Below the pieces are notes generated by a model. That model made no database searches, was not told the DNA's origin, and saw nothing but the letters and a program-made list of their open reading frames with translations. A program made the translations under genes and the position numbers. Positions 7,001-40,494 of a stretch of 64,000 nt of DNA are shown here, piece by piece; positions within the stretch are counted from its first letter, which is position 1, and every line of letters starts with the position of its first letter. The stretch covers positions 248,001 to 312,000 of the forward strand of contig CM060732.1 in the NCBI GenBank assembly GCA_030704615.1, in the 5' to 3' direction. This DNA comes from Takakia lepidozioides. Its lineage: Eukaryota > Plantae > Bryophyta.

Positions 7001-8051
7001 ATGTGTAGCTCTTTGATCCGTATGGGTTTACTCCAACCGTAGATACAGCCAATCGCACATTGCGTGGGTCCTCGGCGAAATCGGGCCAAGTTGCATCTAT
7101 ATGCTTCCATGCAAGGGAATCTGGGACATGCCTTACCAAACCATCGTTTGAGGCATTCCTAGAATACCAAGTCATGAGCTCACTAATGGTCTTGCATTTG
7201 TACATTCGTAATAGACGGGGGATAAGGGGAAAGTGCCTCAACACCTTGGCTGGCTGTTGTAACCTGCCCACATCATGGTATTGGGTTGCACCGCATTTGG
7301 GGCACTCCATAGCGTCCTTGTACTCTCTTCTAAAAAGTACATGTCCTTTTGGACATGCATGTATTTTCACGTAGTTGAGGCCAAGCTTCCCAATCATTTT
7401 GTTGGCCATGTGACAGCTTTTTGGCATTTCATTTGGTTGTGGAAGCAAGTTCAGCCGAAGCAAAGAGAACAACTCGTCCACAAAATGGTCTGAGACACCG
7501 TGGGTTGTGCACAGGTTCATCAACAGCATGGTGGCAGCAAGCTTTGTGGATTTGCATCCCTCCTACAGTGGCACACATGCTTCTTCTAGTGTCATGTGTG
7601 CTGAATTCTCATCTCCATCTCCACCTCCTTCCACGCCTTCCCCCACGTGAATGCCTTCATTTCCTGCGTCATCACCATCCCCAGTTGTCGCAGCGCCGTC
7701 CCCCTCTTCAGCATCGTCCATGATGTGGAATGCTTCCTGCAACATTCGAGTAATCTCCACCCCTCCGTCCATGCCTGGTTCATGTCCTGCGCCCATGACA
7801 TAGTCCTCGTCTGGCCTGTCTGTATGGCTCCCACGGGGGTGTGCATTGTCCAATTGTGCCCACTTCTCATCGTCTTCGTATGCAGGTCCATCTCCAATCC
7901 ACACCCGAAATGCTTCATGTCTTTTGTGGTGAAGGAGATGTGTGCGCACACCGTCCTCAGATCTACTTGTAGTGCCCAAACAACGTTCACATGGGCATGG
8001 CATCCTTGAAAGCCCAAGGGGTCGGGCACGTGCCACTTCTCTTTCCCACAA
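4080..8051 (-). pseudogene. CACTA TnpD/Tnp2 transposase (multi-exon, frameshifted)
   Basis: Domain order: transposase-associated (MPCPCERC), Transposase_21 (KIHACPKG, LRHFPLIPRL, DPRNVRLA, STWPV, HDFPAYG), DUF4218-like (DPMHCEKN, MKSHDLH, FPPSFFDVMTH, WMYPMERYM, PEGSMAEGY), DUF4216-like (EPFIFPSQVEQVFF, WKVV). GT-AG introns near 6120-6390 and 4980-5230. Confidence 0.95.
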
Positions 8052-10339
8052 CCTATCATATCAGATGTTCTGTCTGCAGGGGTGATTAATTGGAAGTCCT
8101 CCGCATGGGCGAGGGGAACTCATTTTTGTTGGGGAGCCTCTTCAATGTAGTTTGTGCACTCCATTGCAGAGGGCCGGATTCTCCTTTGCAGAGACTCCTC
8201 AATTTGGCTCTGCCACTCCCATTTCACTACCGTCAATTCCCTCCTCCTGCAATCTCAATTTGAAAGGTTCAGCCGCACATCCTTTGGCAGAGAAGACAGT
8301 TGACATTTTATACCAACTGGTAGATTCCAGAACATGATGGAAAGTTACACTCAACAGCAAACCATTTAAAAGCCATCAAGATGCTTCCCATCATAACTAG
8401 AATCTTTTCAACAAGACACTGAGAGAAATGACCAAAATCGACTCAAACAACGACATCCTAGAAAACCACCTGTCTCTACAGTTCATGTGTGTGTGAGGAA
8501 TCGGAGGACGTACGTGGAATTTCAATTTTCACGATTCAGGACGTTGTGATCTTGGGCATATGGTTGAATGTGTATGAAATGTGTGCATTGAAGTGTGAAC
8601 AACCCGACTACAAGGCCACAACCTGCACCACTTGTCTTAGGCCATAATGAGTGAACTCCACTCATCGGCGGTCATCGTCTGCACAATTTCCAGTTGCATC
8701 GATTCGTCTCTCAAAATCACATTACGATCAAAAGATTGTAGCAGGGGGTAGTTCGCCCAATGCCACCCTCAGCAGAAGAGCGAGACACATTGAGGAATCA
8801 TGTATTGGAAGGTCGAATTCCATCACGGATTCGGCCGCGATCTCCAAATCACGTTTCGACGGACAATCCTGTTCCGTTGCCTTGAAATTGCACCGTGGCG
8901 AGAAGGGAGTCCATTTGTGTGGCTCTATCACCATGGCGGGAAGGGGAGCATGTTAAGAATGGAGCATTGCCTTGCCACTTCACTCATTTGCAGTTTGCAG
9001 CTTCTTCCACCATCTTTCTTACTTAATTGTGATTCTTGCAATGTTGCCCTTGAGACGGCAACTACAAGTGACCGGATCCTTTGACCGTCGCCTTCAAAGA
9101 CACTTATGTGTAGCAGATCGCAGACCCCCAAATGCCTGGAGAGAAAGCCAGACGGCAGTCAATGCATGCACGGTTGTTTTGCACTGGTTGGGACGGAGTG
9201 GAGTGCAGAGGAGGCGTGTTGTGCCGGAGTTCGCATGCCTAGCATCCTGCAGCCGGTGGCTTTGCACGTTGGGCAGCAGTACCCTCTGCTATATGATTAC
9301 CATTTGTGGTACAGATTCACCGGCCTCCCCTGTCCACTTGGGTCTTGGGACAGTGACTTATGGAGTATGTAGACAGAGTTGCATGTCGCGCAGGTGAACC
9401 AAAATCTCCCATGCAATTCTCCTTCCATTTCTCATTCATGCTTGCATGTGATCCACGGGGTAATTTCCATGTTCTCCCAGCTGATGTGGGTTCGCAAATT
9501 CTCGGTGTGCAGGTGTGTGTGTGAGGACCTCAACCTGGCATGGTGCGATGGGTGTCAAATGGACCCTTCTCTACGATGGGAGAACCACTACAGTTGAGTT
9601 TGTTTTTGCTGAATCATTTGGCAGAACACTGTGTTCACTTCTCACACATCATGCGCATTTTCTCCAAGAATGCATGTAAAGCGGAGCCATACACGGCATC
9701 ATTGCAGTGTGTTTCCTTCGCCTAATTTTGAACGAAATAAAGTTAACGGATCCATGTCAGTTGTGTGAATCACTACATCTAGTTGTCTGGAGGATTGTAA
9801 GTGGTTATTTTGAAACGTCTCAAAGTTGAAAAGGCCATAGTGTCGGATGCACAACACGTGTTCCTATTTGAAATCAACAACGGCCGGATCTTCACTACAG
9901 ATCGGGGGGGTGTGTGATCACACTCCCCTCCTTGTCCTTCTTTCCTCCTTTGCATGTCTTGGTCTTCCTCGCTCGTCTTTGTCTTGGTCATGGTCTATGT
10001 CCTCGCTCGTCTTCATCTTTGTCATGGTCTATGTCCACGCCTAGTAAGAAGCGCTCGACCGCCGAGGCAACATCACCTCCTCCCAATTCTGCACATTCCA
10101 GCCCCGCGGTGCGAAGGAGCCCCCGCCTGGCTCGACTGAATCCGCAAAAGATGGCCTCGGTGCGAGAGGGAAGGCGGCACGGTGGGCGGTCTTCGAGTTC
10201 GGATTCTGACACAAGCGAGTATAGCATGGGCGACGACGATGACGTGGAGGACAGTTCGGCGGAAACTGCACCTCCATCTGCAGAGTCTCTCCAAAAGGTG
10301 CGCAAACGGCACAAACCCGCTGCGCATGAGGTGAGTTCT

Positions 10340-11930
10340 ACCCCTACTTGTGTTCATGTTTTCTGGGCGTTGAGTTCTCCTCAAACTGAAACTGGGATGC
10401 ACATATCCATAAAGTTGTTCAAACAGGAAGGGCAAAGCGCCGAGTCTCACTAAATTCTTCTCGTATAGAGGGATTAACTTTGAGGTCAAGAAAACCTTGC
10501 TTTGTCGCGTCATTGGACTTGCCTTGTAGTACACATTTGCTATATGGGTTGATAACTCCAACGAGGCTAGGTCTGCAGAATCCTTCCAAGTGGGGGTGCT
10601 TAAGGAGTGGATGTCCGCATGCTCCAAAACAGCCAATGTGGCTGTTCGGGGTGGGTGTGGCATCCCTTCCTTAAGCTCTTGCGGAGATTAATTGAAGGTG
10701 AGATGGTGGAGTCTGTTGCAACACATGTCTTCACACCAGAGATCGTAGGTTAATCGACTCTATATCTTGGAAACAGAACCGTCGAGCCAAACAGGCCAAG
10801 TCTTGGCAGAAGACAGTAGAATTGACTCTCAAGGATCTGAATGTGGACCCACACATCTTCATCCTGCTGGATAAATGCGACTTAGAGACTGTAGTGTCCA
10901 CGGAAGTGAGTGCTACCAGAGAAAATGTATAATGAAAATGAAGTTAGGCAGAAAACATCCTTGAACATGTTTTCAATCTGTGACATGGGGGAGGACATCG
11001 TGGAAAAACCGAAGGGTCTACCACTGTGTGCAGAGGGACTAATTTTAAGGTCAAGGAAATGTTGCTTTGTCACGTCATTGCACCTGCGTTGGAGTACGCA
11101 TTTGCTATATGCGTTGATAACTCCAACAAGGCTAGGTCTGCAGTATCCTTCCAAGTGGGGGTGCTTAAGGAGTGGATGTCCGCATGCTCCAAAATAGCCA
11201 CTATGGCTGTTCATGGTGAGTTTGGCATCCCTTCGTTAATCGGAAGTGGTGGGAATAGCTGGTGAGATGGTGGAGTCTATTGCAGCACATGTCTTTACAC
11301 CAGATATCGTAAGTTAATCGACTCTATATCTTGGAAATAGGACCGCCCAGCCAAACAGGCCAAGTCCTGCCATAAGAGACTAGACGAGACTCTCAATGAT
11401 CTGAATGTGGACCGTCAAGTCTTGACCTTGCTGGAACCATGTGACTTAGAGACTGTAGTGTCCAAAGCCATGTGTGCTGCCACAAAATTGTGTTCTGACA
11501 AAGAAGTTAGGCATAAAAAATCCATGAACCTGTTTCTAGATTGTGACATGGGGGAGGACATCCTGGATGACCTGAAGGGTCTACCCACTGTGTGCACCAG
11601 ACTGAAATTGTGGATTTGGTGATGAAGCCTACCTTTGGACAGCAAACAGAAGCTAAGAGGGATGAGAGAGTGCTATTGCCCGTTCTATGGGCTCCACAAA
11701 CACAATATTCATTGTTTGATTCACTGCCCGGGGTGCTATCACCAGACAGACCACCGGATATCCAAGCTATCAATTGAATTGTGTCTGCACCTGTGTTTAC
11801 CAACATTGAGAGTCTTTAGGCCTTTTGGGACTCCGTTGCTGGGCAAGCACATACAGCCAGCACATGATTGTGTGAATAGATGTCCACTGGATATGTGGAA
11901 AACCCGGATGGATGTTCTGTTTCTTGGTAA
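10340..11930 (+). pseudogene. Tandem degenerate fragments of the LINE RT C-terminal region inside the CACTA
   Basis: Two to three diverged, staggered copies homologous to 118-720 and 38240-39170 (MLLCHVIAPALEYAFAICVDNSNKARS, QVGVLKEWMSACSK, DMGEDILDDLKGLPT). Confidence 0.85.
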
Positions 11931-12204: not shown

Positions 12205-15200
12205 CCACCATACAATGCCAACCAACACCAACCTTGGCACCTACCCCCTGCCGGATGGTCTCCACAACAGAGTGCACCATGGGGAGCCCCCCCTGCTTTG
12301 GGGTCGTGGCGTTGGCTTCCTGATGCTGGCACGTCACAATGGGGGCCTCCCACATCTCCATACAGCCCTCCCCCCTCCGGCACACATCAGTCACCCCCCC
12401 ACAACGTATGACGGCGCTGCTCCAGAGCATGGGGGCAGGAAACGGTCATCAGAGCTGAGGAAGGAACGACGCCATGCCATGAAACAATGGGAAGAAGATG
12501 GAGAGGGAAGGGTGGCTGCAGGGCTAAAGCGCCACAAGGTGGAGGTGCATGGAAATGGAGTCATCAATGTTGGCTGCGAAGGTAAGCAACACTGGCAGCG
12601 TGATTTGCGTGGCCTGGCATTGCATTACCTTGACTCAAGTGTACAAGACATTGACCAGCAGTCCCAGAGTGCCATGTCAACAGTAATAGAGGGCATAAAT
12701 GGAATGTACGAGTACACACCTATCCCTGCCAATTGTGATTTTATAGTCAAGCAATGTGGGAAGATAATGAAAGGAGAACGAGCAAAACTGAAAGATAAAT
12801 GGGCGAAGACTGGTGTGAGGCCAATGAACACTGAACCCGCCTATTGGGATAAGCTTGTTGCCTACTGGGAGTCCCCTCGTGGACTTGCAAAGGCCGAAGG
12901 GATGAAGCAAGCGCGTGCTTGTGTCACGAACCCCTCGCGTTGGGGTCGGGCAGGAGTTGCAAGCCAAGCAGCCCGTTTGGTAATTTCCCACACCCCCTTC
13001 TCATTGCTCTTACGTTGTGGCATGTTGTGATGGAAGAGACACCCACGAGTGGGTTTTATTCCTTGTGCAGAATTAGTTGTTATGTGATATGCAGGGCAGT
13101 GCTTTGTCCATATGCTCCTGGCATTTTGTACTGATAGTGTGTGGATGGGCAAATACAGCAAAGACGCAAAGCGCGGAGCCCGTCACTGTCCGAGCTCGGG
13201 GCGGAGCAAAAGAACGCTGCGATTGGCACCCCATCAAAGTCTGTTTTGAGCCAGGTATGTTTTGAAGTCCGGTTTCCATTCATGAATCTGTTGTTGTACT
13301 AAGATTTGGTGGGTATGTGGGGCCCCCACGCATGGTACACGAGGGGTGTTATGCCAAACCCAGCCATCTCCGAATGCCTGAAATCCTGCACATTCGGCCT
13401 CTTCTTCTAGTTTTTAACAGTACGGGTGGGTGTTTGTATGCGTAGGGAGCGGGGAACTCAATGGCAGCCCGCATGGGGGCCCTGGAGAGGCTTGTGGCTC
13501 TCTCTGCGGAGCGGGAGAGGGGAATGGAAGCACAACTGAAAAAGATAGTGGAACTCATGATGGGGCAAAAAGGGGGTGTGACGGGTGGCATTATAGAAGA
13601 CCCCCCTGCTGCGACCATTGTACCTGACAATGAGGAAGTAATTGTAGTGGGTAGGGATGTGACCGAGGTCCAGCCTGTTGTTGATGATATTCACAGTGGG
13701 AGGCAGGGTCCACTCGTTGAAGAGGGAGAGGTCCAGCAAGTTGGTGGGGATGACATGGACGATGGGGGGTCATTGCTGATGATGGGGGAAAGGGGAAGCT
13801 GTAGGGGGAGAGGGTGGTAGTTTGCCTGGTCCAGGCTGCAGGGGGACCGAAACTTTGCCCTCCGGGGTGACTATTGTCTCCCAACCCACTGAGGTGAGAC
13901 CCCGTGACACCCCTTCAAAAGCTCCTTTCATTGAAAAGTCGAAACTAATTGTTCTAGACCTGAACGGGATCCTGTGCCACTCTATTCCTAACTTTCAGCC
14001 CAACCCGAGGCGTCATTGGCCATGGGTGTTGACCACCAACAAGTATGTTTTCCCAAGGCCCCAGGTTTGTGAGTTTTTAAACCTTCTCTTCCGGTATTTC
14101 TACGTTGGGATATGGTCATGTGCTTCCAAGGGGAATGTTGCAGACATCTTGAAAGTGGTGATGCAGGGGGTCAAGGGTTCTCCCCTCTTTGTGTGGTCAC
14201 AAGAGGAGTGTGACCCCTTGATAGAGCCACACCCCACAAAAGGGCCTGCCGTACAGAACTTACAGAAGAGACTATCGAGGGTGTGGTCGCAATTTTCTGG
14301 ATTTAACGAATCCAACACCCTCTTAGTGGATGATTCACCACACAAGGGGAGGGGGAACTCCCCTTTGAACATGGTCCATCCATTGTCGTTTGATGTCACT
14401 GGCAATGTCATTGAGGGGCCCGATTCAGACTACCTTTTAGAAACAGTCTGGCCCTACTGCCAAGATTTGTTTTGCTCCAAGGATGTGCGTGTCTTCACAA
14501 GCACCTGGAAGCTGACCCCGATTGGCAGCTTGAATGTGGGAGAGGATGGGGTCGTTGGGGGAAGTGCTTCTGCGCCCATGAAGGTGAAACTAACCTTACT
14601 GTTTGCAACATGACATCGAAGCCAAAAGAGATGTTTGTTTTGTTCCCCCGGATGCCCTCTCACGCAAGGCTGGCACTATATGTTTTGCAGGGACCACAGG
14701 GAGTGGCACTGGGGTCGAATGTGAAGAAGGTGGGTCCTGCGCCAAGGACCATAGTGCTATGGCGCCAGCATTCCGGATCTGCCCCCCGGCATGAGGAGGC
14801 AGCGCCCAAGGTATGGTTGTTCCCAGCCCCTCTCCGCAAACTTACTTGGTTGGTTTCCTTTATGGATACACTTCCTGAAGCGTTGCAATGTGTATTCATT
14901 GCAGGTGAGCAAGAGGAGTGGGCTGTCCCCGGCACCATCATCGCAGCAGGACGTGGTTCCCCAGGCATGCATTCATGGTTCCTTGCTTTGCCTGGTTTCT
15001 AGTAGGGTTATTTTTGCCAGGAAGTTGTAGTGTGCAGGGTCTGAGCATGGTGTTTGTTAGCTTGCTCCGTGGAGGTGTGTTTATACCATTGCAGCCACCA
15101 GAGTTCATGTTATTCTTATCCGTCTAACTAAACCTCTTTTTGTTGCTGCAATTGAAGACACGTGGGCAGCTTTCCTCAGTTGCCACCCTCAGCGACGAGC

Positions 15201-16757: not shown

Positions 16758-18730
16758 CGTCTACCTGTCTCAGCTGCTGCCAACTCTTTCCTTATCCTTC
16801 TGTCCTCCCTAGCCCTCTCCAAAATCTGCTCTATTTTACTGGGATTCTCACATCGTCTAATCGCTGTATTTGCGAGTTTAGCTGCATAACTAGGAAGGGA
16901 GTAGTCCTTCACCGGGCTCTTCATGAAGTCGGCCCTCGCAAAGAACGGGACATTTGTCCTGGCAAGAAGTGTAGGCCCTACATTTTTCGACCCGGATCCT
17001 GGAATCCTGCACATAACAATCACCCACGAGACCAATGAGAACCACAGTCCGGAAATGCGTTTGACAAAAAATCACCAAGAAGGCTTTGCAAACTTACAAT
17101 GTTTGCACTCACTCGTATTACGGGTTCTCCTCGGCATCAATGTCCACTGTCTCTTCCTCCGAGTCCGACAAATCCGAGGAATCTTTGGCTTTGATGGGAG
17201 CCTTCACATTCCGTTAAAGCCCTTCCAGATGGGATCCCCAGACGGATGTGTCCTCCTCGTAGGCAAAGAGGTGCCGGTCAGAAAATTGCCCAGCCCACAT
17301 TGAGGCACCTGTTACAATGCCATCCACTCATTGAAAAATGGCCCTTCACACATGGCGAATTTGAACAGAATGAGAATTCACAGAACAGCATAGTACAAGA
17401 ATCTGCATACCTGTTCCACAGATGAGGTCCAACACTCTGCCCTCTAGATCAGTGCATGCCTCCGTAATTGTTTGGATGAAGGCGGGGCTCCGAGTCCGTG
17501 AATACCGCAGGGGATCCGTTGAAGTGAGACTATGGGGGAGGAGTTCCGTGAGAACGTTGTTGAACAGGACGTCGTAATCGATGGGGTTGCAGTTCAGGTC
17601 AACCAACGATCCCTCCTTCCGGAAAGCAAAGGTCGAGTTCTCCTTCATAAAGTAGTATGCATCGAACTGCTTCGTCTGCATACACAGTGGGGAACGATTA
17701 GAAATCGAATGCGGCACCGCATTTCAAAACATGTTACAAAATGAAAGGACGATTGCTAATGTCCTAATTACCTTCTTCCCTTCCGACCGAAGGCCCAATG
17801 TGTTGATGCACGTCCACTTCTTCTTCAGAATTGGGACAGCGCTCTTGCGGTCCACTTCGCAATTCTTGTCTCTGTTTTTTTGCCTCTGCTCACCAGGACA
17901 ACCACACAGCCTCTGTCGTCCAACACCATGCGGGCAAGCCCGAATCCTTTCTTCCAAAAGTCCTCGGAGTACCTGTTCCAAGATGGCAAACCTTGCAGTC
18001 CTTCCACAAGCTCTCCGTCCGGAATATCCAAGATGATCATATCGCAAGACCACTTGGTGGCTTTTCCGCCCCTCCTGCAATCATTCCCTGCACACACCTT
18101 CTCAAAGAAAGAGACCATCTTCAGAAACCCAGAGGTGTTGGAAGGCTCTGCTTCAGCCGCCTTCTTCAGGGCTCTGCCCTTCAGACCCTCCATGGTCTTG
18201 ATGTATGCCAACTTGGCTGCCAGTCCGTCCAAAGCCGCCAAGAAACTCTCATTGACACACTGAACTACTGTTTCTGGCTCCACTTTTCGGCCTCGTCATT
18301 TCCCCACCGGCTCGAAAGGGTGCCCCCCCGGGGGGTTGAAGAGTGGCTTCTTGGCTGAGCCTGTTCTCGTCCCTCTCGTGACAACGGTGGGCACAGGGGA
18401 TTTCGGCTGCATTTCAGGGGGTGGGCTGGTTGCAAAGTCTCCATCGGAGTCCTCTTCGTCACCCTCTTCCTGCTCTTTCTGTTTCTGCTTCTTTGTCTTC
18501 TTGGGTGTCACAACTGCTGCTCCTTGCTGGCAAGTCCTCTTCTTCGACCCCTTCTGTTGAGCCTGCACAGCTGCATCCACCGTCTTCTGTGCCATCTCAG
18601 CTGCCTTTCTGGATTGTTCCAGAAGCAGCAGAGCAGCGTCCTTTGCCGACTCAGGCTCAGCACGGACACGTCTTTCCTTTCTCTTCTCAATCCGTTTTCC
18701 CGTGCAGATCTTTCTCCGATTCGTCAACAA
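16758..18730 (-). pseudogene. Beta-class amino (N6-A/N4-C) DNA methyltransferase-like gene, copy 1, spliced
   Basis: DMIILDIPDG (motif IV-like, 18017-18028), ARMVLDDRGCVVVLV, RTRSPAFIQTITEACTDLEGRVLDLICGTG/ASMWAGQFSDRHLFAYEED (motifs X, I, II). GT-AG introns 17676-17771 and 17309-17410 restore the frame. One frameshift near 17850 and a TAA stop near 17215. The 3' part continues at 2978-3007 beyond the CACTA. Confidence 0.75.
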
Positions 18731-18951
18731 GTCCGCCAGACATGTCTAGGTACCACGGGCATCCAACGAGATGCGCGGCATGCCATTGTTTCTGCATCTC
18801 TGGTAGGTAGACACAGCTTGGTCCCAGGCACGGTCCAAGCCATGAAAAACGGGGGCTCTTGCGTATTTCATATACCTGCAAGACAGTCAACATGCGTGAG
18901 CACAAGTTATGAGAATGTACTCGTAGAGTGCAACCGAAACGATAAAGTGTG

Positions 18952-19292
18952 AATGCTACCACAAGATGAAGAGCCATTCATCTTCCCATCGCAAGTTGAG
19001 CAAGTTTTCTTTTCAGATGACATCCATGCGTCGGGATGGAAGGGGGTTCTTCACAAGGACCCCCGGGCCAAACGAGTCGTTGCCGACGTCCATGATCTGG
19101 ACCTAGGGGAGAATGCCGACCACGAGGGTCTGAGGGAACCACGAAATCTACCAGATACGGCCGAACCAGTCTCTTTGGAAGGAGCAGTTACCTTTAATGA
19201 GGAAGACATTCCAGGGTTGGTAATTACCGCCAGGCAAATTGCAGATGTGGGTAGTGAAGGGGAAGATTATTTGGATACGGATAGTGAGCCCA
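18952..19292 (+). repeat. Inverted near-identical duplicate of the CACTA transposase 3' end (4085-4424)
   Basis: MLPQDEEPFIFPSQVEQVFF...LDTDSEP is essentially identical at DNA level to the reverse complement of 4085-4424. Confidence 0.92.
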
Positions 19293-19519
19293 GACAAGAT
19301 GGCTAGTTCTGTGTCCCAGTGGGAAGGGTCCTACTGCACATTCCAGCATTTGCATACTGCACCTTGTGCAAACAGCAATCCATACAACAAAAGACACGTC
19401 CCAGCATACTGGCAGTGAATTGCAAAAAACCTTAACAGAAGATTATCCAAGCATGTATATTCCCCAATGGCACAGGGAAGCTGCTTGATTTCTGAATGAA
19501 AATGTATGTGCCATGAGTG

Positions 19520-20924: not shown

Positions 20925-21279
20925 GAATTGGGATGCGGGACCGCATTCCCGTTCAGCCATGTGCAATGGGTTGCATTGTTCAGAAACAACACAATTGCGG
21001 CCTGTCTTAATGAGAACAACTTGTTTGGAGGATTACCTAGTTATGAGCATGAGCGGCATGAGCGGAGAGTAGAGTAGAGAGTAAATAGTAAGACAATCGG
21101 TCTTCATGAGCAGCAGTACAAATTTCAAAAATAAAAAAAACAATAAAAAACATTAATTTAATGCACTGTTAGGAAAAAACAAAATATATTGGCCCTTGAA
21201 GGAAAATTGTAGTTTTGACAGTTGTGCTCATGATATTTCGTCTTCCGCTCATGCCAATTCCCAGCGACATGTGCAAATA

Positions 21280-21535
21280 TGGCGTCCCCAACTTGCTTCC
21301 ACTTTAAATCCAGAGGTCACAGGAACGAGACCGATTGGACGGGCACAGCCATCAACCATTTCGAGCTCAGGAGAAGGTTCCGAAGTCCACATTTAAGTGT
21401 GCGCAATTGCAAGAACCACCACACTGCATGTCTGGTTGTAATGCCAAGCAGTTCTCTGTGTTGCACCGTTTCCCTGACCTCACCCGAGCTTGCATACACG
21501 GTGGTTCTCATTGTCACAAATTGGCGAGGGGGAGG
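21280..21535 (+). pseudogene. Fragment of GCM-like domain of MULE transposase (inverted relative to its neighbour)
   Basis: RNETDWTG...FKCA...CMSGCNAKQF...PDLTRACIHGGSHCHKLARG matches 47280-47490. Confidence 0.8.
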
Positions 21536-21649
21536 GAAAAAAAAGGCGCCGAATTACCTGTCATGAGGGGACCTATAGCTGCGGAATTCGACATCATTTT
21601 GCGCCAGAAGAGACCTATTACGCGAAATACGTCGCCGTTTTTTCAGGTT

Positions 21650-22016
21650 ACGGACGCAACGCGCCCCACAAACAACGTAGCGCACCCGCACACCATCGAG
21701 ACTCTTCATGCTGTTGGTTTTGGTAAGGCACCAAGGATGACCGTCATGTTTTCTATCCATATCTGTCAAACATCCGAACGACCTCGAGTACTCCGCCCGA
21801 GGAAGGAACTCAAAGAAGATATTACCGTCGATCGTCGGCGGGAAGGCATGTAACAATTTAATTGCGAACTTGCGAAACATGCCTGATCTCCAGGACGACC
21901 TCGGAACTTCCATGACCTCGTCTGAGTTGGACAGGTTGTGAACAACCCGGTTCTCGCTCGTCTTCATGGATGGGTTCGGCTCTGGATTTACTTCGTTGCG
22001 ACTTATTCTTTTGAGG
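21650..22016 (-). pseudogene. Fragment of MULE transposase N-terminus, interrupted by the solo LTR
   Basis: FPPTIDGNIFFEF...MDRKHDGHPWCLTKT...DGVRVRYVVCG matches 47030-47225. Confidence 0.8.
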
Positions 22017-22021
22017 TAGCC

Positions 22022-22746
22022 TGTCGCGGCCCTTTGCCTTGAGGGCAGGGGAGGTCGGGACACAAGAGGGGCTGCCCTGTGGTGGGGGGCAGTAGCAGCG
22101 ATAGGTACGAGGGATGAAGCACCCTGAGTGCCCAGGCATCAGGAGGCGGAGGCGCTCACTAGGTGGAGTCCCGCACACCGGGTTGCGGTGGGGTGGTTCC
22201 ACAAGGGGTGGTGGTAGCTTAGCAGGACAGTGGGGGCTGGCATAGGACTCACCATGGGGTGGAGACCTCGAGGTGGGAGTCATGGGAAGTCTTGGGGACT
22301 CATCACGGGCCATTGGGACCGCGGTGAGTGGGCCAAGACTCACCGCGACTCACCACGGGAATCGAGGGTCTCGTGGTGGTTCGCCATAAAATGGGCAGGT
22401 GGTTGGCGTTGTGAAACCCAGCGGGAAAGCTACAGAAGTATATATAGGGAGTAGTAACCCCGAGAACGGTGCAAGCCCGTTGGTGACCAAAAACTAGTGA
22501 GTCAGCGAGCGAGCCGGAAAGCGACCAAAGAGTGGGGAGCTGTTCCGGATTGCCATCTACCAAAGGGAATTCTCCTAGTCCCAATTAGGTGGAGGGTTTA
22601 GTGGGAAGCAAAGGGGGGACCGTTATGTCCCGGTGAGCAGCCGAAGCTCCAAGTTGGCCCGGGCGGCCAGGTTGGGAGTCAGGCGCGCGCATCAAAGCGA
22701 GTAACTATGACTTGAAGGGGAGCTTACCGAAGTGAGGTGCGTGACA
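22022..22746 (+). mobile_element. Solo LTR of the chromovirus family
   Basis: TGTCGCGG...GCGTGACA ends, 5-bp TSD TAGCC on both sides (22017-22021, 22747-22751). Homologous to LTR 34175-34903 but more diverged. Confidence 0.96.
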
Positions 22747-23289
22747 TAGCCACTCTCTGATTCGCAGATTGTTTCGTGGAAGGCGCCAGGATAGAAGGTG
22801 CATTTGGCGGGCAAATGAAGTCCCCAACAGCCCTGTATATGATGTTGTCCGATGGTGGAACTCGTCATTCCCTGCCATCGCCGAAATCATCGTGGAGCAC
22901 AACAATACTCTCGACAACAAGGCCGTTTGAGTCCTTCCTTTCCTCCTCCAAAAAAACCGACCCCGGTTTCAGGTGGTATCGAACGCACAGATTTTTCTCC
23001 ATCACCCGGCAGATGTCCCCTCTGCACGGAAATGAAGCTCTATGCTCGTGAGGAGGGCAGTACACTGTAGCGCTTGGGGTTTCCGCCATGGGAGATGTGC
23101 ACACAAGACTGCCAGGATGGCGTGCAGGGAAGCTCCCTGGTAGAAGGGGGATAGCGATGGGAAGGAATGCGGTGCCGATTTGTCCGAACGACGAAGCCTG
23201 ATCCAAATCCAGGGAGCCAACTATCTCAAAAATCCAGAGTCAAAGCGTTAATGAACCTTGTCTCCGGAATGCGGCCCCTGGTCTTTGCG

Positions 23290-24420
23290 CAATAACTGCC
23301 AACGGTATGCAGTCAGAAAGTGGGGGGCCGTCCGGATGATGTCGGCTGAAGGGGAGAAGCCGGCACTGTGCCGTCACATTACTACCCCCGAATGGAAATT
23401 CGGCACCCAATACCCAACAGGGGCCGCACGGATGAAGTCGTCTGGGGCAGAGATGCCGGCACCTGTCCGACAGAAAACATCCCCCGGATGGAAATTCAGC
23501 GCCGAATTTCCATTCGGATCCACCCAAAGGAAGTCCTGTCGGGGGGTCAGGCCGAAAACTGGCTGACCTAAAAACCTCCACGGATGGAAAAACGGTGCCG
23601 AATTTCCATCCGAGGCCTTTCAGATGCAGTCGGCTCGGGGGAAAGGCCGCAATCTGGCCCTCACATTACAACCCCCGGACGGAAATTCGGCACCGAATAT
23701 ACAACAGGGGAAGCCCGAATGAAGTCGCCTCGGGCGCAGAGGCCGACGCGTGTGCGACAGAGAACATCCCCTGGATGGACATTCGGCGCCGAATTTCCAT
23801 CCGGGCCCCCCAAAGGAAGTCGTGTCGGGGGTCAGGCCGAAAACTGGCCGGCATGAAAACATCCGCAGATGGAAAAAACGGCGCCGAATTTCCATCCGGG
23901 GCGGTTCGGATGCAATCGGGGAGGGGGGAGAGGCCGGCACCTGGCCGTCACATTTCAACCCCCGGACGGAAATTCGGCACCGAATATCCAGCAGGGGACG
24001 CCCGGATGAAGTCGCCTCGGGCGTAGAGGCCGGCACGTGTTCGACAGAGAGCATCCCCTATATGGAGATTCGGCGCCGAATTTCCATCCGGGCCCCCCCA
24101 AAGGAAGTCGTGTCGGGGGGTCAGGCCGAAAACTGGCCGACATAAAAACCTCCCCAGATGGAAAAACGGCGCCGAATTTCCATCCGGGGCCGTTCCAATG
24201 CAGTCAAGGAGGGGGGAGAGGCCGGCACCTGGCCGTCATATTTCAACCCTCGGACGGAAATTCGGCACCGAATATCCAACAGAGCGGCGGAGAGGCCGGC
24301 ACCTCTCCGACAGAGACCATCCCCCGGATGGAAATTCGGCGCCGAATTTCCATCGGGGCCCCCTCAAAGGAAGTCGTAAAAACCTCCCAGAATGGAAAAA
24401 CGGCGCCGAATTTCCGTCCG
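23290..24420. repeat. ~287-bp tandem repeat (~3.8 units), several GAAATTCGGCGCCGAATTTC palindromes per unit
   Basis: GTCAGGCCGAAAACTGG recurs at 23546, 23831 and 24120. Confidence 0.9.
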
Positions 24421-24544
24421 AGGTTGTTCCGATTTGCCTCTAGCAGTCAAGGATTCCAAGAAAAACGTGTCTACAAGTGCACTTCAGCCACCAAACAAAC
24501 AGTTAGGTTTGTTTTTCTCCGAAAAATCAATCGGACACGCTCAG

Positions 24545-25600
24545 AATTACCTGCAGGAAGGTAATTCAGCGATTCGAAATACCTGGCGAATGGAAATTCG
24601 GCGCCGAATATCCATACGCCAACGATCCGACTTACCTGCTGGATGGGAATTCGGCGCCGGATTTCCATCCATCCGGGATTCGAGTTACCTTCAGGATGGA
24701 AATTCGGCGCCGGATTTCCATCCAACCGGGATTCGAATTACCTGTAGGATGGAAATTCGGCGCCGGATTTCCATCCATCCGGGATTCGAATTACCTGCAG
24801 GATGGAAATTCGGCGACGGATCTCCATCCATCCGCTATCCGACCAACCTTGCGGATGGAAATCCGGCCTCGGATTTCCATCCATCTGCCTCCGAATTACC
24901 TGCTTGAGGGAAATTTCGCGCGCCGCCCGACCTGCGCGGATGGAAATCCGGCGCCGGATTTCCATCCATCCGCTTCGGAATTACTTGCGTGAGGGAAATT
25001 TGGCGCGCCGCCCTACCTGCGCAGATGGAAATCCGGCGTCGGATTTCCATCCATCCGCTTCCGAATTACCTGCGTGAGGGAAATTTGGCGCGCCGCCCTA
25101 CCGAATTTGCAACGCCGACTTACCTGGAGGATGGAAATCCGGCACCGGATTTCCATCCATCCGCGCTCCGAATTACCTGCATGATGGAAATTTTGCGCGC
25201 CGACCTACCTGGCGGATAGAAATGCGGCGCCGGATTTCCATCCATCCGCACTTCGAATTACCTGCATGACGGAAATTTTGCGCGCCGACTTACCTGGCGG
25301 ATGGAAATCCGGCACCGGATTTCCATCCATCCGCTCTTCGAATTACCTGCATGACGGAAATTTTGCGCGCCGACTTACCTGGAGGATGGAAATTCGTCGC
25401 TGGATTTCCATCCATCCGCGCTCCGAATTACCTGCATGACGGAAATTTTGTACCTGGCGGATGGAAATCATGCGCCGGATTTCCATCCATCCGCTCTTCG
25501 AATTACCTGCATGATGGAAATTTTGCGCGCCGACTTACCTGGCGGATGGAAATCCGGCGCCGGATTTCCATCCATCCGCTCTTCGAATTACCTGCATGAC
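24545..25600. repeat. 53-bp minisatellite grading into an 85-bp minisatellite (hairpin GGATGGAAATCCGGCGCCGGATTTCCATCC)
   Basis: Unit starts at 24641, 24694, 24747, 24800 (53 bp), then 24853, 24938, 25023 and 25214, 25299, 25384 (85 bp). Confidence 0.93.
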
Positions 25601-26122
25601 TAGAAAAATGGCGCCGAATTTCCGATTTTGGTGCCAGTCAGATCTGGGACTTAGCCATTTTTGGCCCCTAATTGGAAAAATGGCGCCGAAGAAAAAAAAA
25701 AAAAAAAAAAAAAAACGCCATTTTTCTTGTTCGGGGCCGAAAACGGCTAAGTCCCAGATCTGACTGGCACCCAAAATCGGAAATTCGGCGCCATTTTTCC
25801 AGTTCTGGGCCCAGTCAAATCTGGGACTTAGCCATTTTCTTCCCTGAAATGGAAAAATGGCTAAGTCCCTACGATGGCTGGAACCGCAACTGGAAATTCG
25901 GCACCATTTTTCCAGTTCCGTGCCCTATCAGATCTGGGACTTAGCCATTTTCGGCCCCGAACTGGAAAAATGGCGCCATTTTTCCAGTTCGGGGCCGAAA
26001 ATGGCTAAGTCCCTAGGGTGGCTGGCACCAAAATCGGAAATTCGGCGCCATTTTTCCAGTTCCGGGCCCAGTCAGATCTGGGACTTAGCCATTTTCGGCC
26101 CCGAATTAGAAAAAAGGCACAG

Positions 26123-26178
<56 letters not shown>

Positions 26179-26310
26179 GCCATTTTTTCAGTTCGGGGCC
26201 GAAAACGGCTAAGTCCCAAATCTGACTGGCACCAAAATCGGAAATTCGGCGCCAGTTTTCCAGTTCTGGGCCTAGTCAGATCTGGGACTTCGCCATTTTC
26301 GGCCCCGAAC
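25600..26310. repeat. Alternating inverted repeats (CAGATCTGGGACTTAGCCATTTT / AAAATGGCTAAGTCCC) separated by poly-A tracts
   Basis: About 5 units, fold-back layout, each with a GGCGCC palindrome. A-runs at 25692-25715 and 26123-26177. Confidence 0.9.
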
Positions 26311-26436
26311 TGGAAAAATGGTTTTTTTCTCTCTTTTTTTTTTTCTTTTTTTTTTCTTTTTCGTGGCGTTTTTATTTCATTGAAAGACCGTTTCTGCTTC
26401 TGCTGGTATTGACATTCTTCAAGTGGATTTGTTCTT

Positions 26437-26789
26437 ACTGTAGGAGGGACGTCTACACCGCAGTTCATGGGCAGGAGGAACGTGCATTTTTTTGCCAGGG
26501 GGAATTTCATGCCTAGTCCAGAAAGGGACTACATCCTTCCTACTTATGTTGCCCGGCTTGCTTCGGTGTCCATTAGGAGGTGTTCCGAACCTAGTCGTGT
26601 ACAGCAGATTTTAGACGAGGCAAGCCTCAAGAAAATGAAGATGAGGGAGGAGGCAGCAGCTATTAGAGCCCGTCAGGTTTGTAGATTTGTCTTGGATTCA
26701 GCTGAGGAAAGTGGGGGAGAAGATGCAGAAGATTCCCAGGAGGTGAGATGGACAGTCCCCCAAGAGGACGGGATTTTTGAGAGGCATAG
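26437..26789 (+). pseudogene. C-terminal tail exon of the MTase-like gene, copy 3 (continues at 33593-33683 after the Gypsy insertion)
   Basis: HFFARGNFMPSPERDYILPTYVARLA...IRRC...RFVLDSAEES...VRWTVPQEDGIF aligns with PFFARADFMKSPVKDYSLPSYAAKLA and PFFARKSFLASPHKPFFLPAYA. Confidence 0.82.
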
Positions 26790-28339
26790 TGTCGCGCACC
26801 TCCCTTCGGTAAGCTCCCCTTCACGTCATAGTTACTCGCTTTGATGCGCGCGCCTGACTCCCAACCTGGCCGCCGGGCCAACTTGGAGCTTCGGCTACTC
26901 ACCGGGACATAACGGTCCCCCTTCGCTCCCCACTAAACCCTCCACCTATTTGGGACTAGTGGAATTCCCTTTGGTAGATGGCAGTCCGGAACAGCTCCCC
27001 ACTCTTTGGTCGCTTTCCGGCTCGCTCGCTTACTCACTAGATTTTGGTCACCAACGGGCTTGCACCGTTCTCGGGGTTACTACTCCCTATATATACTTCT
27101 ATAGCTGTCCGCGGGGGTTTCACAACCAGCCATGCCATTTTATGGCGAACCACCACGAAAACCCTCGACTCCCGGTGATGAGTCGCGGTGAGTCTTGGCC
27201 CGCTCACCACGGCCCCTATGGACCGTGATGAGTCCCAAGACTCCCCACGACTCCCACCACGAGGTCTCCGCCCCCATGGTGAGTCTTATGCCACCCCCAC
27301 TAAGTCCCGCTAAGCTACCACCACCCCTTGTGGAGCCACCCCCACCGCAACCCGGTGTGCGGGGCTCCACCTAGTGAGCGCCACCGCCTCCTTGAGTGCC
27401 TTGGGCACTCAAGGGTGCTTCAGCCCCCCATACCTATCGCTGCCGCTGCCCCCACCACAGGGGCAGCCCCTCATGTGTCCCGACCCCCTGCCCTCAAGGC
27501 AAAGGGCCGCGACACACACCCCTACCAACAGGGAGTCGATGTCCTCATCGACTTGTCCATTTTGTAGAAACGAACATCCAAGTTGTGGCGTCCCACATCA
27601 AGGAGTTTGTTTCCGTACCATGGCGTCCCATGGCAAAGAACCAAACCCCACACTTGACTCTACTCTCCACTAGCTAGTTCGGCCGACTTCCTCCAAGTCC
27701 CGGCCAAGGGTGGAGCCTCTCCAGCTCCTCCCAGTGCACTCTTCTTGGCCTACTTCAAGGCCAAGGAACGATCCTCCCCGAGGATCGAATCGCCTTACTG
27801 CAACAACATTGCTTGCGATCGCTCATGATGCCGCTTTTGGCATCACCTTGAGCAAGGGTTCACCTAGAACCCTCTTTGACTAGGAAGATAACCTTGAACC
27901 AACCGTGCGCCCCAATCACTACAATTGGGTCCGCCTTGGAATGCTGGCCTGAGGTACGGGAACACGCCGAAGCCGCACTACGACTTCGTCCCGAGGCTAC
28001 ACGATTATAGTACGTGAACGGAAAGCACGTAGCTTCCGCGTTAGCCCGCACTACAAGGAAACCCCCTCGGTAGTGCGGTTATAGTACGCGCACGCGCCAG
28101 GTGCGCACTAGCACGTGAACTCCCAAAGAAGGCGCAAGTTTCCTTGCCCCTTGGATGGGGGTCACCCGATTTCGGCACTACGCAAACACACGATTAACCC
28201 AATTTACCTCTCCCACTTTTATAAGCTAGCATGCATTCTACACACTAGCCAACCATACCATGCATCACCATTCCAAACAAAATAGGACGCACAACATTTG
28301 GAACCCATTTCCTTTATAACAAATTTTTGTACAATTTTT

Positions 28340-31300
28340 GCCTCCACATGATGATAGCCCTTCCATTTGACGAGATACTCCGTTTCTCGATTCCTAAACG
28401 TCCTCGATTTAAGTATTGCCTCCACCTCGTACTCAGGTTCATTTTCATGATCCAACAGCATAGGTGGCGGACGCAACACTTGATGCCGATTCGGACGCGC
28501 TTCATATTTGAAGTAAGGCTTCAAAAGGGAGACATGGAATATTGGGTGCACCTTGCTGTTTGCCGGCAGCTCCAATTCATACACATCCTCATTCATAACC
28601 TTCCGAATGCGAAAGGGTCCCGCATACGGAGGTACGAACTTCGGACTCACTTCCGGAGGTAGTCGGAAATTCTTGATGTTCAACCAGACCTCTGTGCCTG
28701 CCTCAAACTTCACTTCCCTCCGCTTCCGATTCGCCTGCCTTTCATACCGTTTCCTAGCTTTGGCAATATTGTACTTTGCAAGCTTCAACAAACGCTCGCG
28801 TTCTTCCAGTACCGCCGCTACTGCCGGTTCCTCAACGTCATGGGCGGCCCAACATGTCGGCACCAGAGGTGCTTTTCCATAGACCAATACAAAAGGGGAA
28901 ACTCCCGTTGCGGAGTGTTCTGTGTTATTATAACAGAACTCTGCCGCGTCTAAGTGTTCCATCCAGTCTGATTGGTCTGCCGACACGTAATTCCGCAAGA
29001 ATTGCTTCACTACGGAATTCACTCTTTCCGTTTGGCCGTCCGTCGTAGGTCGGAAGGCGGTGCTCATCTTCAGCCTCGTCCCCATCTTCTTCCAAAGTGT
29101 CCTCCAAAATTTACTCGTAAACTTTGGATCGCGGTCCGAGACAATATCCTTCGGGACTCCATGATGCTTTAAGACGTGGGCGAAGTAAAGTCGCCCTGTC
29201 TCCTGCGCCGTTGTCGTCTCCTTGGTGGGGATGAAATGGCCCATTTTACTGAACCTATCCACCACCACCATGATTGCATCGAATCCTTTTGACAGCGGCA
29301 TAGCAGTCATGAAATCCATCGAGACGCTTTCCCAAGTCCCCTCTGGAATCGGCAAAGGTTGTAACAGCCCCGATTGCTTTTTGTACTCACTCCGGTTTTG
29401 TTGGCATGTGGTGCATGTCTTGACATACTCCTCTGCCTCCTCCCTCAGTTTGGGCCAGAAATACTCTTTCTTCAAGAGTGCCGCAGTGCGCTTGGCTCCG
29501 CCGTGGCCCGCAAGCGGGCTATCATGGCATTCTCTCAAGAGGCTATCTCTGATCCCTCCCTTCGGCATGTAGAGATGCTTTTGCTTATACCGGAGCAGTC
29601 CATTTTGCAAGTGGAACTGCGATTTACCCCCCATCCTCAAGTCCTGCATCACGGACTTCGCCAGCTCATCCTTCCGGCATACTTATCACATGTGCCACTG
29701 CCATCACCTTTTTCCTCTCAGCTTCAGTTATAGGACACAGACAAGGAGCTGCTGCTTTCTACTTAAAGCATCGGCCACCACATTGTCCCGTCCCGGTTTG
29801 TACTGGATATCCACGTCGAACACCGCCAAAGTATCTTGCCACCTAAGTTGTTTTGGGGATAACTTGGGCTGCGTGGCAAAATACTTCACTGTGACATTGT
29901 CCGTGAACACCTTCACTGGGTTGGAACCAACATAGTGGCGCCAAAGCTCGAGGCAATGCACCACCGCCTTCATCTCTTTTTCGTGCGTCGGCCACCGTCG
30001 CTCCACTTCATTCAGTTTCTTACTTTCGTAAGCCACTGGACGTCCATCTTGCATAAGTACACCCCCAATCGCGAAGTCCGACGCATCTGTATGAATCTCA
30101 AATGGACGATCGAACTCCGGGATTTTCAAGAGCTTCCGCCATCCGCTGCTTCAATTCAGCAAAAGCTTGGCCACAAAATGTATTCCATACCCAGACTTTG
30201 GATTTACACAGAAGGTCCAACAGCGGCCCCGCGATCTTGGCAAAATTTCTCACATACTTCCGGTAATAGGAGGCGAGTCCTAGGAAGGATCGCACTCCCG
30301 GGACCGCCCAGTCCAAGATCGCCCTCACCTTTCTGTCATCCATTTTGATCCCATCCTGTGTAATCACATGCCCCAAGAACTCCACTTTTGTGACCCCGAA
30401 TTTGCACTTTGAAGCTTTGGCATACAGCTTCCCTTCTCGCAATTTTTGGAACACCCTTTTGAGGTGCTCCAGGTGCTCCTCCTTTGTTTTTGAGTACACC
30501 AAGATGTCGTCGATGTACACGATCACAAAGTCATCCAACCACTCTTGAAAAAGGCTGTTCATCAGCGTGCTAAATGTCGCTGGTGCATTGGTGAGCCCAA
30601 AAGGCATCACCAAGAACTCATATGAACCATACCTTGTCCTGCACGCGGTCTTCTCCTCATCTCCTTCCGCCACCCAAATTTGATGATAGCCGGAGCGCAA
30701 GTCGATCCGGCTGAAATACTTCGCTCCTGCCAACCGATCGAAGAGGTCGTCGATCCTTGGCAAAGGGTACCGGTTTTTTATAGTCACCTTATTCAGAGCC
30801 CTGTAATCGACACACATCCGCAGCGTCCCATCCTTCTTGTCTGCGAATAGCACCGGGGCTCCGTAAGGTGACTTACTCGGTCGGATGTACCCCTTTGACA
30901 TTAGATCCTTGAGCTGAGTCTTCAGCTCGACCAACTCCCTGTGGCTCAACCGGTAGGGTGCCTTGGCAGGCGGTTCCGTTCCCGGTATCACCTCAATCTT
31001 GTGGTCAACTCCTCTTCGCGATGGCAAGCCGCTTGGTAAATCCTCCGGCATCACATCCTGGTATTTCTCCAAAATCCCCTTGATCCAATCTGGGCTCGGC
31101 TCCCCATCGCCTTCTCCCTTCACTTCTCTAATGTAAAGCAAAAACTGGGGTTCATGTGCCTCCTCCACGGCCCACTCCCTTGCTGACAGAAGGTTTATTC
31201 GCCCTCCCACGGATTTGGGCGTTTCCGACACTCGTAAGACCTCGTCACCATTCCCACATGACAGCGTGACTACTCTCTTGCGGCCATCTATGACCGCTCC

Positions 31301-32811: not shown

Positions 32812-32852
32812 GATGAGGCCAATCCCAAGGACGATCGCATACTGAACTCTAC

Positions 32853-32864
32853 GCTCTGATACCA
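32853..32864 (-). promoter_or_regulatory. Primer binding site (tRNA-iMet)
   Basis: TGGTATCAGAGC two bases after the 5' LTR. Confidence 0.95.
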
Positions 32865-39908: not shown

Positions 39909-40494
39909 AGGGGGGACAGTTACCCCATGTGTAGATTTTGCTCGTCTTGTGTAAACTCTTGAGTACCAAATCCTTCATATTCAGGACGTTCAGGTTCTGT
40001 ACACTTAGGGGCATCTTGTCCCTCTGGCTATTTGGATTCAATAAGGATGAGAATAGGCCTGATACAGTGAGTACAACCATTGTGTCACGCCAATCATTAT
40101 TAGGAAAGAAAATAGGCCTAATGTGCTCATAACCTCTGATGACTGGGAATCTTGATGCCCATGTCCTCCTGTCATTGCTGCACAACAATCCGCCACCACA
40201 CCCGCATATCATCACCGATCAGCCCAGGCCTGCCCCACATTCCCGCGCACTTACTTCATCCCCTTCGATTCCTGCCCTCTACATACATCACAACCTCAAA
40301 CCTTCTCCCAAGTCAGTGCCCTCGCCACATTGTCCTACCATGCCCTATGGAGAGGAGGGGAGAGGAGGAAAAAGAGAAAGCCCGCGGAAGGGAAGGCGGA
40401 CGCGGGAGAGGAGGAGAAAGAAAAGAGAAAGCCGTGGGAGGTCAAGGGAGAAAGATCGTGGAGCGAAAAAAAAAAAAAAAAACAAACATACAAA

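Follow-up and report, generated by a model that had tools for sequence, protein, structure and literature searches.

A decayed methyltransferase-like gene of Takakia lepidozioides as the probable remnant of an accessory gene of land-plant DNA transposons

What kind of gene lies behind the intron-bearing, methyltransferase-like sequence at positions 16758-18730 of a 64,000-nucleotide stretch of the Takakia lepidozioides genome (Eukaryota; Plantae; Bryophyta; GenBank assembly GCA_030704615.1, contig CM060732.1, positions 248,001 to 312,000 of the forward strand)? We refer to this whole stretch as the window and give positions in it unless another locus is named; the sequence in question is called copy 1. 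A preliminary description regarded it as a spliced, multi-copy relative of the bacterial beta-class N6-adenine/N4-cytosine (N6A/N4C) DNA amino-methyltransferases, and implied a writer of N4-methylcytosine (4mC) or N6-methyladenine (6mA). According to our analysis, copy 1 is most probably a dead, doubly truncated accessory gene from a family of DNA transposons represented in ferns, a liverwort and Takakia. Copy 1 itself has no function left: it is ordinary debris, of value as a pointer to a gene family.

The peptides on which the preliminary description was built can all be located on the minus strand: DMIILDIPDG (18014-18043), ARMVLDDRGCVVVLV (17891-17935), RSPAFIQTI (17466-17492), VLDLICGT (17412-17435) and LFAYEED (17250-17270). 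Its two introns, 17676-17771 and 17309-17410, have exact GT...AG ends and recur at equivalent positions elsewhere, both of them in an apparently intact relative on a metagenome contig (L006, described below) and the second in a half-length copy from the same window (copy 2), so that the picture of a eukaryotised gene with conserved introns stands. The reading frame has suffered more than the single frameshift originally proposed. There are at least three frame changes (near 18700; between the open reading frames (ORFs) 18296-18730 and 17825-18283, with a G7 run nearby at ~18320; and at an A7 run near 17885), as well as two in-frame TAA codons, at 17214-17216 (a Gln codon in copy 2) and at 17118-17120. 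The similarity to relatives starts abruptly at ~18952-18959 on the 5' side and ends at 16758 on the 3' side. Copy 1 is thus a pseudogene, truncated at both ends.

The components of copy 1 are listed in Table 1. Its upstream exon is aligned in tblastn by residues 28-105 of the family protein P0017, and a motif hidden Markov model (HMM) made from 12 family proteins plus the window segment 18690-18959 has its sole window match there, with an E-value (2.6e-27) that is partly due to this construction. Family proteins P0024 and P0043 contain K/E-rich linkers equivalent to the low-complexity linker of copy 1. The N-terminal half of the methyltransferase-like domain bears as landmarks a motif IV-like DIPDG (18014-18028), PSWN (17975-17986) and the strand LDDRGCVVVLV (17891-17923). 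Around the A7 frameshift the tblastn alignments of P0004 and P0018 run across both frames, and L006 reads KQWVCVNTLPF in a single frame where copy 1 has two. Exon 2 shows 40% identity to L006 (tblastn E 7e-18) and is also matched by the family HMM (E 1.5e-11).

A phmmer search with the 152-amino acid (aa) exon of copy 1 against 1.84 billion representative proteins gave 22 matches (best E 2e-9), one of which, a repetitive bacterial surface protein, is plainly spurious; reciprocal tblastn of the family proteins to the window reached E 5e-15. Where the matches carry names, they are hypothetical proteins from two ferns, Adiantum nelumboides and A. capillus-veneris, and from the liverwort Riccia sorocarpa; the remaining ones are contigs from read archives and one metagenome. 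Further searches added ~20 Adiantum proteins, some of them apparently full-length (854-1008 aa). Judging from these comparisons, the similarity of copy 1 to the family is not due to chance, and the family is real but small. Its intact members are proteins of ~1000 aa. Adiantum has many copies; the four copies of Riccia fall into a single 90%-identity cluster and lie on four chromosomes, and one of them bears the automatic annotation "DNA methylase N-4/N-6 domain protein". Liverwort and fern proteins also share an N-terminal domain with a conserved W-(E/D)-G-N-H-R motif (L004 7478-8032; P0043 residues 170-345), which is missing from the window. A tentative reading of this domain as ParB/Srx, suggested by a likeness to the DGxHR motif and with ParB-methylase fusions of phages and plasmids as candidate ancestors of the full-length protein, found no support in Pfam, in the profile search of PDB or in tblastn against phages.

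The apparently intact relative L006 occupies positions 7410-10816 of a contig from ENA (ERZ25070695), a metagenome contig of eukaryotic, plant-like DNA. It comprises the N-terminal domain, a CPWW region and both methyltransferase halves, with the motif D-V-P-T-G. Because this relative is apparently intact and has both intron positions in common with copy 1, the sub-lineage found in the window would appear to have, or recently to have had, working copies somewhere.

In the relatives the gene does not stand alone. The four Riccia loci have 9-13 kb in common, at 88-95% identity, and in them the methyltransferase-like part makes up the 3' portion of a longer gene placed head-to-head with a transposase gene of ~1300 aa, which has a Cys-rich N-terminal region, DDE-like motifs (identified by eye) and, at the C-terminus, a SWIM-type CxC...CxH finger. 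This divergent pair is found in the Riccia loci L003 and L004 and again in the Adiantum locus L007, where a homolog of the transposase is encoded on the opposite strand ~4.7 kb upstream of the full-length P0043 (tblastn E 2e-50). In Riccia the SWIM transposase falls into at least 17 clusters, and UniRef names some of them SWIM-type. A pseudogene and a fragment of the same transposase are present in the window (Table 1), and the fragment is divergent to copy 1, an arrangement that repeats the one seen in the Riccia and Adiantum elements. We conclude that the carrier is a multi-copy, SWIM-transposase cut-and-paste element of at least 9 kb, which by its architecture may be Mutator-like or Zisupton-like. 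The data support a gene that is multi-copy, mobile in the relatives and situated in transposon DNA, as had been supposed; what we find there is a multi-copy, transposase-linked gene and not a single-copy syntenic host gene devoid of transposable element context. The supposed four copies in 64 kb are reduced to two for the methyltransferase-like domain, the piece that does occur four times being a tail ORF (see below).

The right terminus of the Riccia element ends in ...GCTGATATGTTACATGGTCTC with palindromic GCTGATATCAGC subterminal repeats (L003 17520-17631, L004 14201-14317, L005 14393-14504). A short inverted arrangement of these right-terminus motifs is present at ~1150-1217 of L004.

Which activity, if any, would such a gene bring to a transposon? 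The alignment of the family reveals two conserved blocks. The first reads (W/Y)-x-x-D-L-I-x-x-D-(L/M/F/V/I)-P-(T/S/F)-G, followed by P-x-W-N and by an L-D-D-x-G-(W/C)-hydrophobic strand; the second, ~120-170 residues further on, reads S-P-x-F-x-x-x-(I/L), followed by (L/I)-(D/E)-x-x-x-G-T-G and by G-R-x-C-x-x-x-D/E. The order of the two blocks in the relatives is that of the window, with a motif IV-like sequence preceding motif I in all family members (in the window, on the minus strand, DIPDG before LDLICGTG at 17412-17435). The element order on which the assignment to the beta class was originally based therefore holds for the family.

The motif IV consensus, which the preliminary description proposed to collect, can now be given as D-(L/M/F/V/I)-P-(T/S/F)-G, mostly D-hydrophobic-P-(T/S)-G; it is neither DIPY nor (D/N/S)PP(Y/F). 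The window D-I-P-D-G had been explained as one base away from DIPY. Because ferns, liverworts and the other relatives all carry D-hydrophobic-P-(T/S/F)-G, the alignment identifies it instead as the family-normal motif with D in place of the usual T/S, and not as a one-base decay of DIPY. The tetrapeptide (D/N/S)PP(Y/F/W), by which catalytically competent amino-methyltransferases are defined, is absent from every member of the family, including the form TSPPY known from DN4MT1. In contrast, the liverwort, the ferns and the window lineage retain the S-adenosylmethionine (SAM)-binding motif I (D/E-x-x-x-G-x-G) as well as the acidic residue that follows strand 2 (D-L-I-C-G-T-G-A-S ...FAYEED in the window, E-L-G-A-G-T-G-P ...VIDND in ferns, D-L-R-C-G-T-G ...FAFEPD in L006), and the protein probably binds SAM. 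As the catalytic tetrapeptide is absent while the SAM-binding motifs are kept, the family is not to be filed among the N6A/N4C writers, of which it has the fold only, and the 4mC/6mA writer implied at the outset is not supported by these sequences as its function.

The fold was predicted for the fern homolog, with residues 700-1008 of the Adiantum protein P0043 as the AlphaFold target and an alignment of 44 rows; the model is confident (pLDDT 80.8, pTM 0.83). The top 25 chains retrieved by Foldseek from PDB are all beta-class DNA amino-methyltransferases (E 1e-10 to 1e-8), among them M.BceJIV, M1.HpyAVI (TM up to 0.76 on the target), CcrM (TM 0.58 on the query) and the three enzymes proposed for comparison in the preliminary description, M.RsrI, M.MboIIA and M.PvuII. 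They are followed, with E-values up to 1e-7, by MT-A70 enzymes, a Type III Mod subunit and the bdelloid N4CMT (8s9m). Among predicted viral structures, N4/N6 DNA methylases of phages and giant viruses come first, including one phage ParB-methylase fusion. An earlier model of the Riccia domain, from a 28-row alignment, was poor (pLDDT 59); its top structural families were the same as those of the fern model. When phages were searched by tblastn with the domain, nothing matched, and no donor lineage was identified.

Sequence profiles lead to the same enzymes. In a search of the family profile against all PDB sequences, two fell below E 0.01, both M1.HpyAVI (5hek/5hfj, E 0.0015). The alignment is colinear over ~150 residues: it begins at the strand that follows motif IV, includes motif I, where the family aligns to VLDPFMGSGTT...IGIE, and reaches as far as the acidic residue that follows strand 2. 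The secondary-structure string of the fern model places the motif IV Asp at the end of strand E64-70, followed by an L-P-T-G loop, i.e. in the canonical place of motif IV; no equivalent of strand 3 is evident after strand 2. These models and alignments support a Rossmann-like, beta-class N6A/N4C amino-methyltransferase fold for the family, and the window copy, at ~35% identity to the fern homolog, would share it by homology. With the bacterial and phage enzymes the family thus has in common the fold, the element order (motif IV strand first, helix and motif I/II last) and the G-x-G of motif I with the acidic residue after strand 2. It differs from them in having D-hydrophobic-P-(T/S)-G instead of (D/N/S)PP(Y/F/W), in staying below the Pfam cut-off, in being eukaryotic and intron-bearing, and in carrying the domain inside a protein of ~1000 aa.

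Taken together, the gene pair, its repeated occurrence and the decayed state of the locus are best explained if copy 1 is the remnant of a transposon accessory gene, as proposed above. It may represent an internal-deletion derivative: two thirds of the gene, on its N-terminal side, would have been lost along with most of the transposase, and a 342-bp piece of CACTA transposon would have served as filler at the junction. In active elements the protein would bind SAM and act on the element's own nucleic acid, either as an atypical methyltransferase or as a SAM-dependent binder. If the accessory genes of red-algal Plavaka and Zisupton elements and the VANC protein of VANDAL elements are taken as analogs, it could regulate transposition or blunt silencing by the host.

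Several observations weigh against this explanation. The test against PF01555, envisaged in the preliminary description, was negative: six window pieces gave no match to it in Pfam (only AviRa, at E 0.1), and the gathering score is reached by no window piece and by no member of the family. PF01555 is the commonest Pfam match in the family, yet it is found in 3 of the 44 sequences, covers the C-terminal motif I part only, and always stays below the cut-off (on the full-length P0020, 24.5 bits against a gathering threshold of 26.7, E 3e-5, profile positions 166-217; the best E-value among domain slices is 8.4e-6). The fold evidence comes from the fern homolog and not from the broken window protein, and with the catalytic tetrapeptide missing, catalysis on DNA may be lost. 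For the transposase, Pfam returned weak SWIM matches (E 0.05-0.5) and no model of a Mutator-like element or other transposase. Searches for the left end, inverted repeats and a target-site duplication of the Riccia element found none, and L006 has no transposase match in the 10 kb upstream of the called gene. The ratio of nonsynonymous to synonymous substitution rates (dN/dS), another of the checks proposed at the start, cuts both ways: over the domain, pairwise values among the Riccia copies, based on small counts, are 0.37-0.68 in five pairs, which speaks for the explanation, and ~1.1 in one, which speaks against it. Selection on active lineages mixed with neutral decay after insertion would give such values. 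The retention of the motifs and of the gene pair in liverwort and fern is a stronger argument for constraint than dN/dS.

Catalytic inertness, with the domain serving as a DNA-, RNA- or SAM-binding module, is a possibility that we entertain tentatively: the canonical catalytic tetrapeptide is lost throughout the family, while the SAM-binding motifs have been well kept over several hundred million years, which to our knowledge is unusual for dead methyltransferase domains. Such a pseudo-enzyme would have its precedents among the inactive methyltransferase domains of eukaryotes and retrotransposons (PMC4738411). METTL14/Kar4 and the methyltransferase domain of DIRS1 have likewise lost the tetrapeptide, and DIRS1 is a mobile element too (PMC4738411). 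The family differs from these degenerate domains in its well-conserved SAM-binding motifs, and from DIRS1 also in the class of fold and in the type of element.

A working DNA amino-methyltransferase (6mA/4mC) in the intact relatives appears rather doubtful to us. It would require a new motif IV in which the Trp of P-x-W-N replaces the missing aromatic residue, and the conservation of motif I, the strand-2 acidic residue, the motif IV Asp and Pro and P-x-W-N from liverwort to fern would be in keeping with it, as would the nearest folds, all of DNA amino-methyltransferases, and a dN/dS that is mostly below 1. We know, however, of no active N6A/N4C enzyme that lacks the PP-aromatic part of motif IV, and DN4MT1 has the TSPPY that is absent here. 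The most far-reaching version, an ancient cut-and-paste lineage older than the liverwort-fern split, whose SAM-dependent nucleic-acid-modifying enzyme, descended from a beta-class DNA methyltransferase of bacteria or phages and equipped with the new motif (D-hydrophobic-P-T-G plus P-x-W-N), would place 6mA/4mC on its own DNA and thereby time transposition or escape silencing by 5-methylcytosine (5mC), seems to us unlikely in this complete form.

Methylation of RNA or protein instead of DNA is suggested by the MT-A70 RNA enzymes among the structural matches, by weak Pfam matches to the AviRa and cap guanine-N2 methyltransferase models, and by the automatic naming of one Riccia copy as trimethylguanosine synthase. 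We regard it as quite improbable: among the matches from PDB and from the viral structures alike, DNA enzymes rank ahead of RNA enzymes, the sole significant sequence match is a DNA enzyme, and the transposon context favors DNA.

The carrier may also be questioned. A CACTA (En/Spm) fragment borders copy 1 directly at its truncated 5' end, a second one (DUF4218/DUF4216; 49549-51137 on the plus strand) follows the SWIM transposase pseudogene, and a plant-type CACTA transposase gene with Transpos_assoc, Transposase_21, DUF4218 and DUF4216 domains, to which this second fragment is 30-39% identical, is found at 4084-8059 on the minus strand, so that the methyltransferase-like gene or fragment might have been captured by, or belong to, a CACTA element. 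The adjoining piece is, however, 342 bp long, lies on the opposite strand and ends abruptly, and we read it as filler or nested debris. The CACTA proteins of the window matched none of the Riccia, Adiantum and L006 loci, where the conserved neighbor is the SWIM transposase; the gene was accordingly rejected as a candidate CACTA ORF2, and we hold a CACTA origin to be very unlikely.

That copy 1 is a host epigenetic gene lying among transposons by chance is hardly credible, even though eukaryotic beta-class writers exist and N4CMT is among the structural matches, given a doubly truncated pseudogene with a second broken copy within 64 kb, four Riccia copies on four chromosomes, many copies in Adiantum, and a catalytic motif that differs from TSPPY. 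The known host writers of 4mC, MpDN4MT1a/b of Marchantia and N4CMT of bdelloids, are of bacterial origin, carry (T)SPPY and have demonstrated activity; they resemble the family in being eukaryotic and intron-bearing and in their beta-class fold, and differ from it in that the family is transposon-borne, multi-copy, linked to a transposase and devoid of (T)SPPY.

Copy 2 consists of the C-terminal half of the methyltransferase-like domain, with one frameshift and a motif I degraded to VLNITANTG. Its intron (61041-61161) occupies the phase-1 position within motif I, at the identical codon position to intron 2 of copy 1. In a DNA self-comparison of the window no close copy of the methyltransferase part was found, the tail and the CACTA fragment being the only repeated pieces. 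The tail is a module of ~100 aa with the pattern FFAR..F..SP..Y.LP.Y..A..IRR..P, then ...SAEES...RW(S/T)VP..ED, present in four copies that show 29-78% amino acid identity: one directly downstream of each methyltransferase-like copy, and two solo. Two of the copies, 59117-59494 and 26467-26844, gave no Pfam matches, and tblastn with two tail copies did not find the module in the Riccia, Adiantum and L006 loci. The tail could be a further exon, joined to the methyltransferase-like ORF by a third intron, or a separate conserved ORF. The exon reading has in its favor a GTGAGT that overlaps the TGA of the methyltransferase-like ORF in both window copies, and against it that the ORF closes with (F/Y)E-stop in each of them and also in Riccia (YE-TGA in copy 1, ...PVFE-TGA in copy 2, ...DLFE-stop in Riccia).

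Table 1. Positions of the methyltransferase-like copies, the tail module, and transposase remnants in the window
Feature	Position	Strand	Basis or remark
342-bp C-terminal fragment of a CACTA transposase gene	18952-19293	+	96.5% identical to 4084-4424
Upstream conserved exon of copy 1 (YRF...CPWYLD; CPWYLD at 18744-18761)	18690-18959	-	5' side cut at ~18952-18959
Basic/acidic low-complexity linker ORF, out of frame with the coding pieces on either side	18299-18730	-	ORF list, translation
Methyltransferase-like N-terminal half	17828-18283	-	phmmer, 22 family matches; family HMM E 3.7e-33, with this window row in its alignment
End of the N-terminal-half exon in a shifted frame (ILKKKWTCINTLGLRSEGKK), past the A7 frameshift near 17885	17772-17831	-	Alignments of P0004 and P0018
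Intron 1, GT...AG	17676-17771	-	Sequence read; intron of L006 at equivalent position
Exon 2: helix ahead of motif I (RSPAFIQTI) and motif I (VLDLICGTG)	17411-17675	-	tblastn to L006, family HMM
Intron 2, GT...AG, phase 1, splits a motif I glycine codon	17309-17410	-	Position common to copy 2 and L006
Exon 3: ASMWAGQFSDRHLFAYEED, then acidic C-terminus; ends YE-TGA at 17109-17117	17109-17308	-	Translation, comparison with copy 2 and Riccia
Tail ORF downstream of copy 1 (FFARADF...IRRCE...), cut at 16758	16758-17035	-	
Copy 2, C-terminal half only	60940-61355	-	tblastn from copy 1 exon 2, E 3.8e-10; sequence read; HMM
Tail ORF downstream of copy 2	60191-60625	-	
Solo tail ORF	59117-59494	-	DNA 96% identical to 16758-16916
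Solo tail ORF adjoining an LTR (long terminal repeat)	26467-26844	+	47% amino acid identity to the copy 1 tail (tblastn)
SWIM-type transposase pseudogene, several stops and frame changes	46988-48916	+	tblastn of Riccia ORFs, E 4e-43 and 5e-8
SWIM-type transposase fragment (Cys-rich region)	21263-21517	+	tblastn E 1e-4; blastp of ORF 21335-21853 against Riccia P0053, E 3e-6

The remainder of the window is a transposon graveyard of nested Ty3/gypsy chromoviruses, the CACTA gene and fragments, and tandem arrays. Of the two chromovirus copies, at 26788-33594 on the minus strand and 40716-46331 on the plus strand, one is young, because its LTRs are 98.6% identical and its gag, protease-reverse transcriptase and integrase-chromodomain ORFs are open; the second copy is ~95-97% identical and is broken up by other repeats. 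LTR-like blocks related to these elements are found at 22022-22747 and 34172-34903. A repeat block of ~2.1 kb occurs at 119-2979 and 38573-40717 with 96-98% identity, the first copy containing a 690-bp insertion (1222-1913), and has diverged relatives at 10363-11821 and 37221-37518. Two blocks of self-similar tandem arrays at 23324-26320, with units 66-88% identical, contain ORFs of the type MEIRRRISI..., and long A/T and AAG-type tracts are present at ~25.7-26.2 kb. An intronless ORF of 263 aa on the plus strand (13822-14613) encodes an NLI-interacting-factor-like (CTD phosphatase) domain (PF03031, E 5.7e-14); amid transposon debris, it may be a retrocopy or a captured gene.

The closest published analog that we found comes from red algae, where giant transposons of the Plavaka, Zisupton and Mutator groups harbor accessory genes that are conserved over long times and move between transposase partners (10.1101/2025.02.11.637652). 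One of these, PAG2, combines PF01555 with a SET domain, and another, PAG3, a ParB-like domain with a 2-oxoglutarate oxygenase (10.1101/2025.02.11.637652). Compared by description, PAG2 and the land-plant family both provide large cut-and-paste transposons with an accessory gene for a DNA methylase domain of the beta-class type; they differ in that the latter is found in land plants, is a single fused protein and does not reach the PF01555 cut-off, and Pfam scans of its full-length members found no SET domain. By this analogy the land-plant family would be of the same kind, with a different architecture and a non-canonical motif IV. A wider parallel is offered by the anti-silencing factor VANC of the Mutator-like VANDAL elements and by the TET/JBP genes of fungal Kyakuja-Dileera-Zisupton/Plavaka elements (cited in 10.1101/2025.02.11.637652). 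Their protein folds are unrelated to that of the family; what they would have in common with it, given the function proposed here, is a gene directed at the epigenetic state of DNA and carried by the DNA transposon itself.

The clades of eukaryotic adenine methyltransferases, of which land plants have few, were catalogued by Iyer et al. (PMC4738411), and the family described here is not among them; we also found no description of it for land plants in the literature. It looks like an apparently undescribed land-plant case of a transposon that carries its own DNA-modification-type protein. DN4MT1 of Marchantia has so far been the only characterized bacterial-type amino-methyltransferase of land plants. 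That gene and transposase have been kept together in liverwort and fern points to a long-lived transposon lineage which invests in such a protein. Should intact copies prove active, they would supply plant genomes with DNA marks other than 5mC and represent a counter-measure of a new kind on the part of transposons; should they prove inert, the family would illustrate clearly how a mobile element can recruit a pseudo-enzyme.

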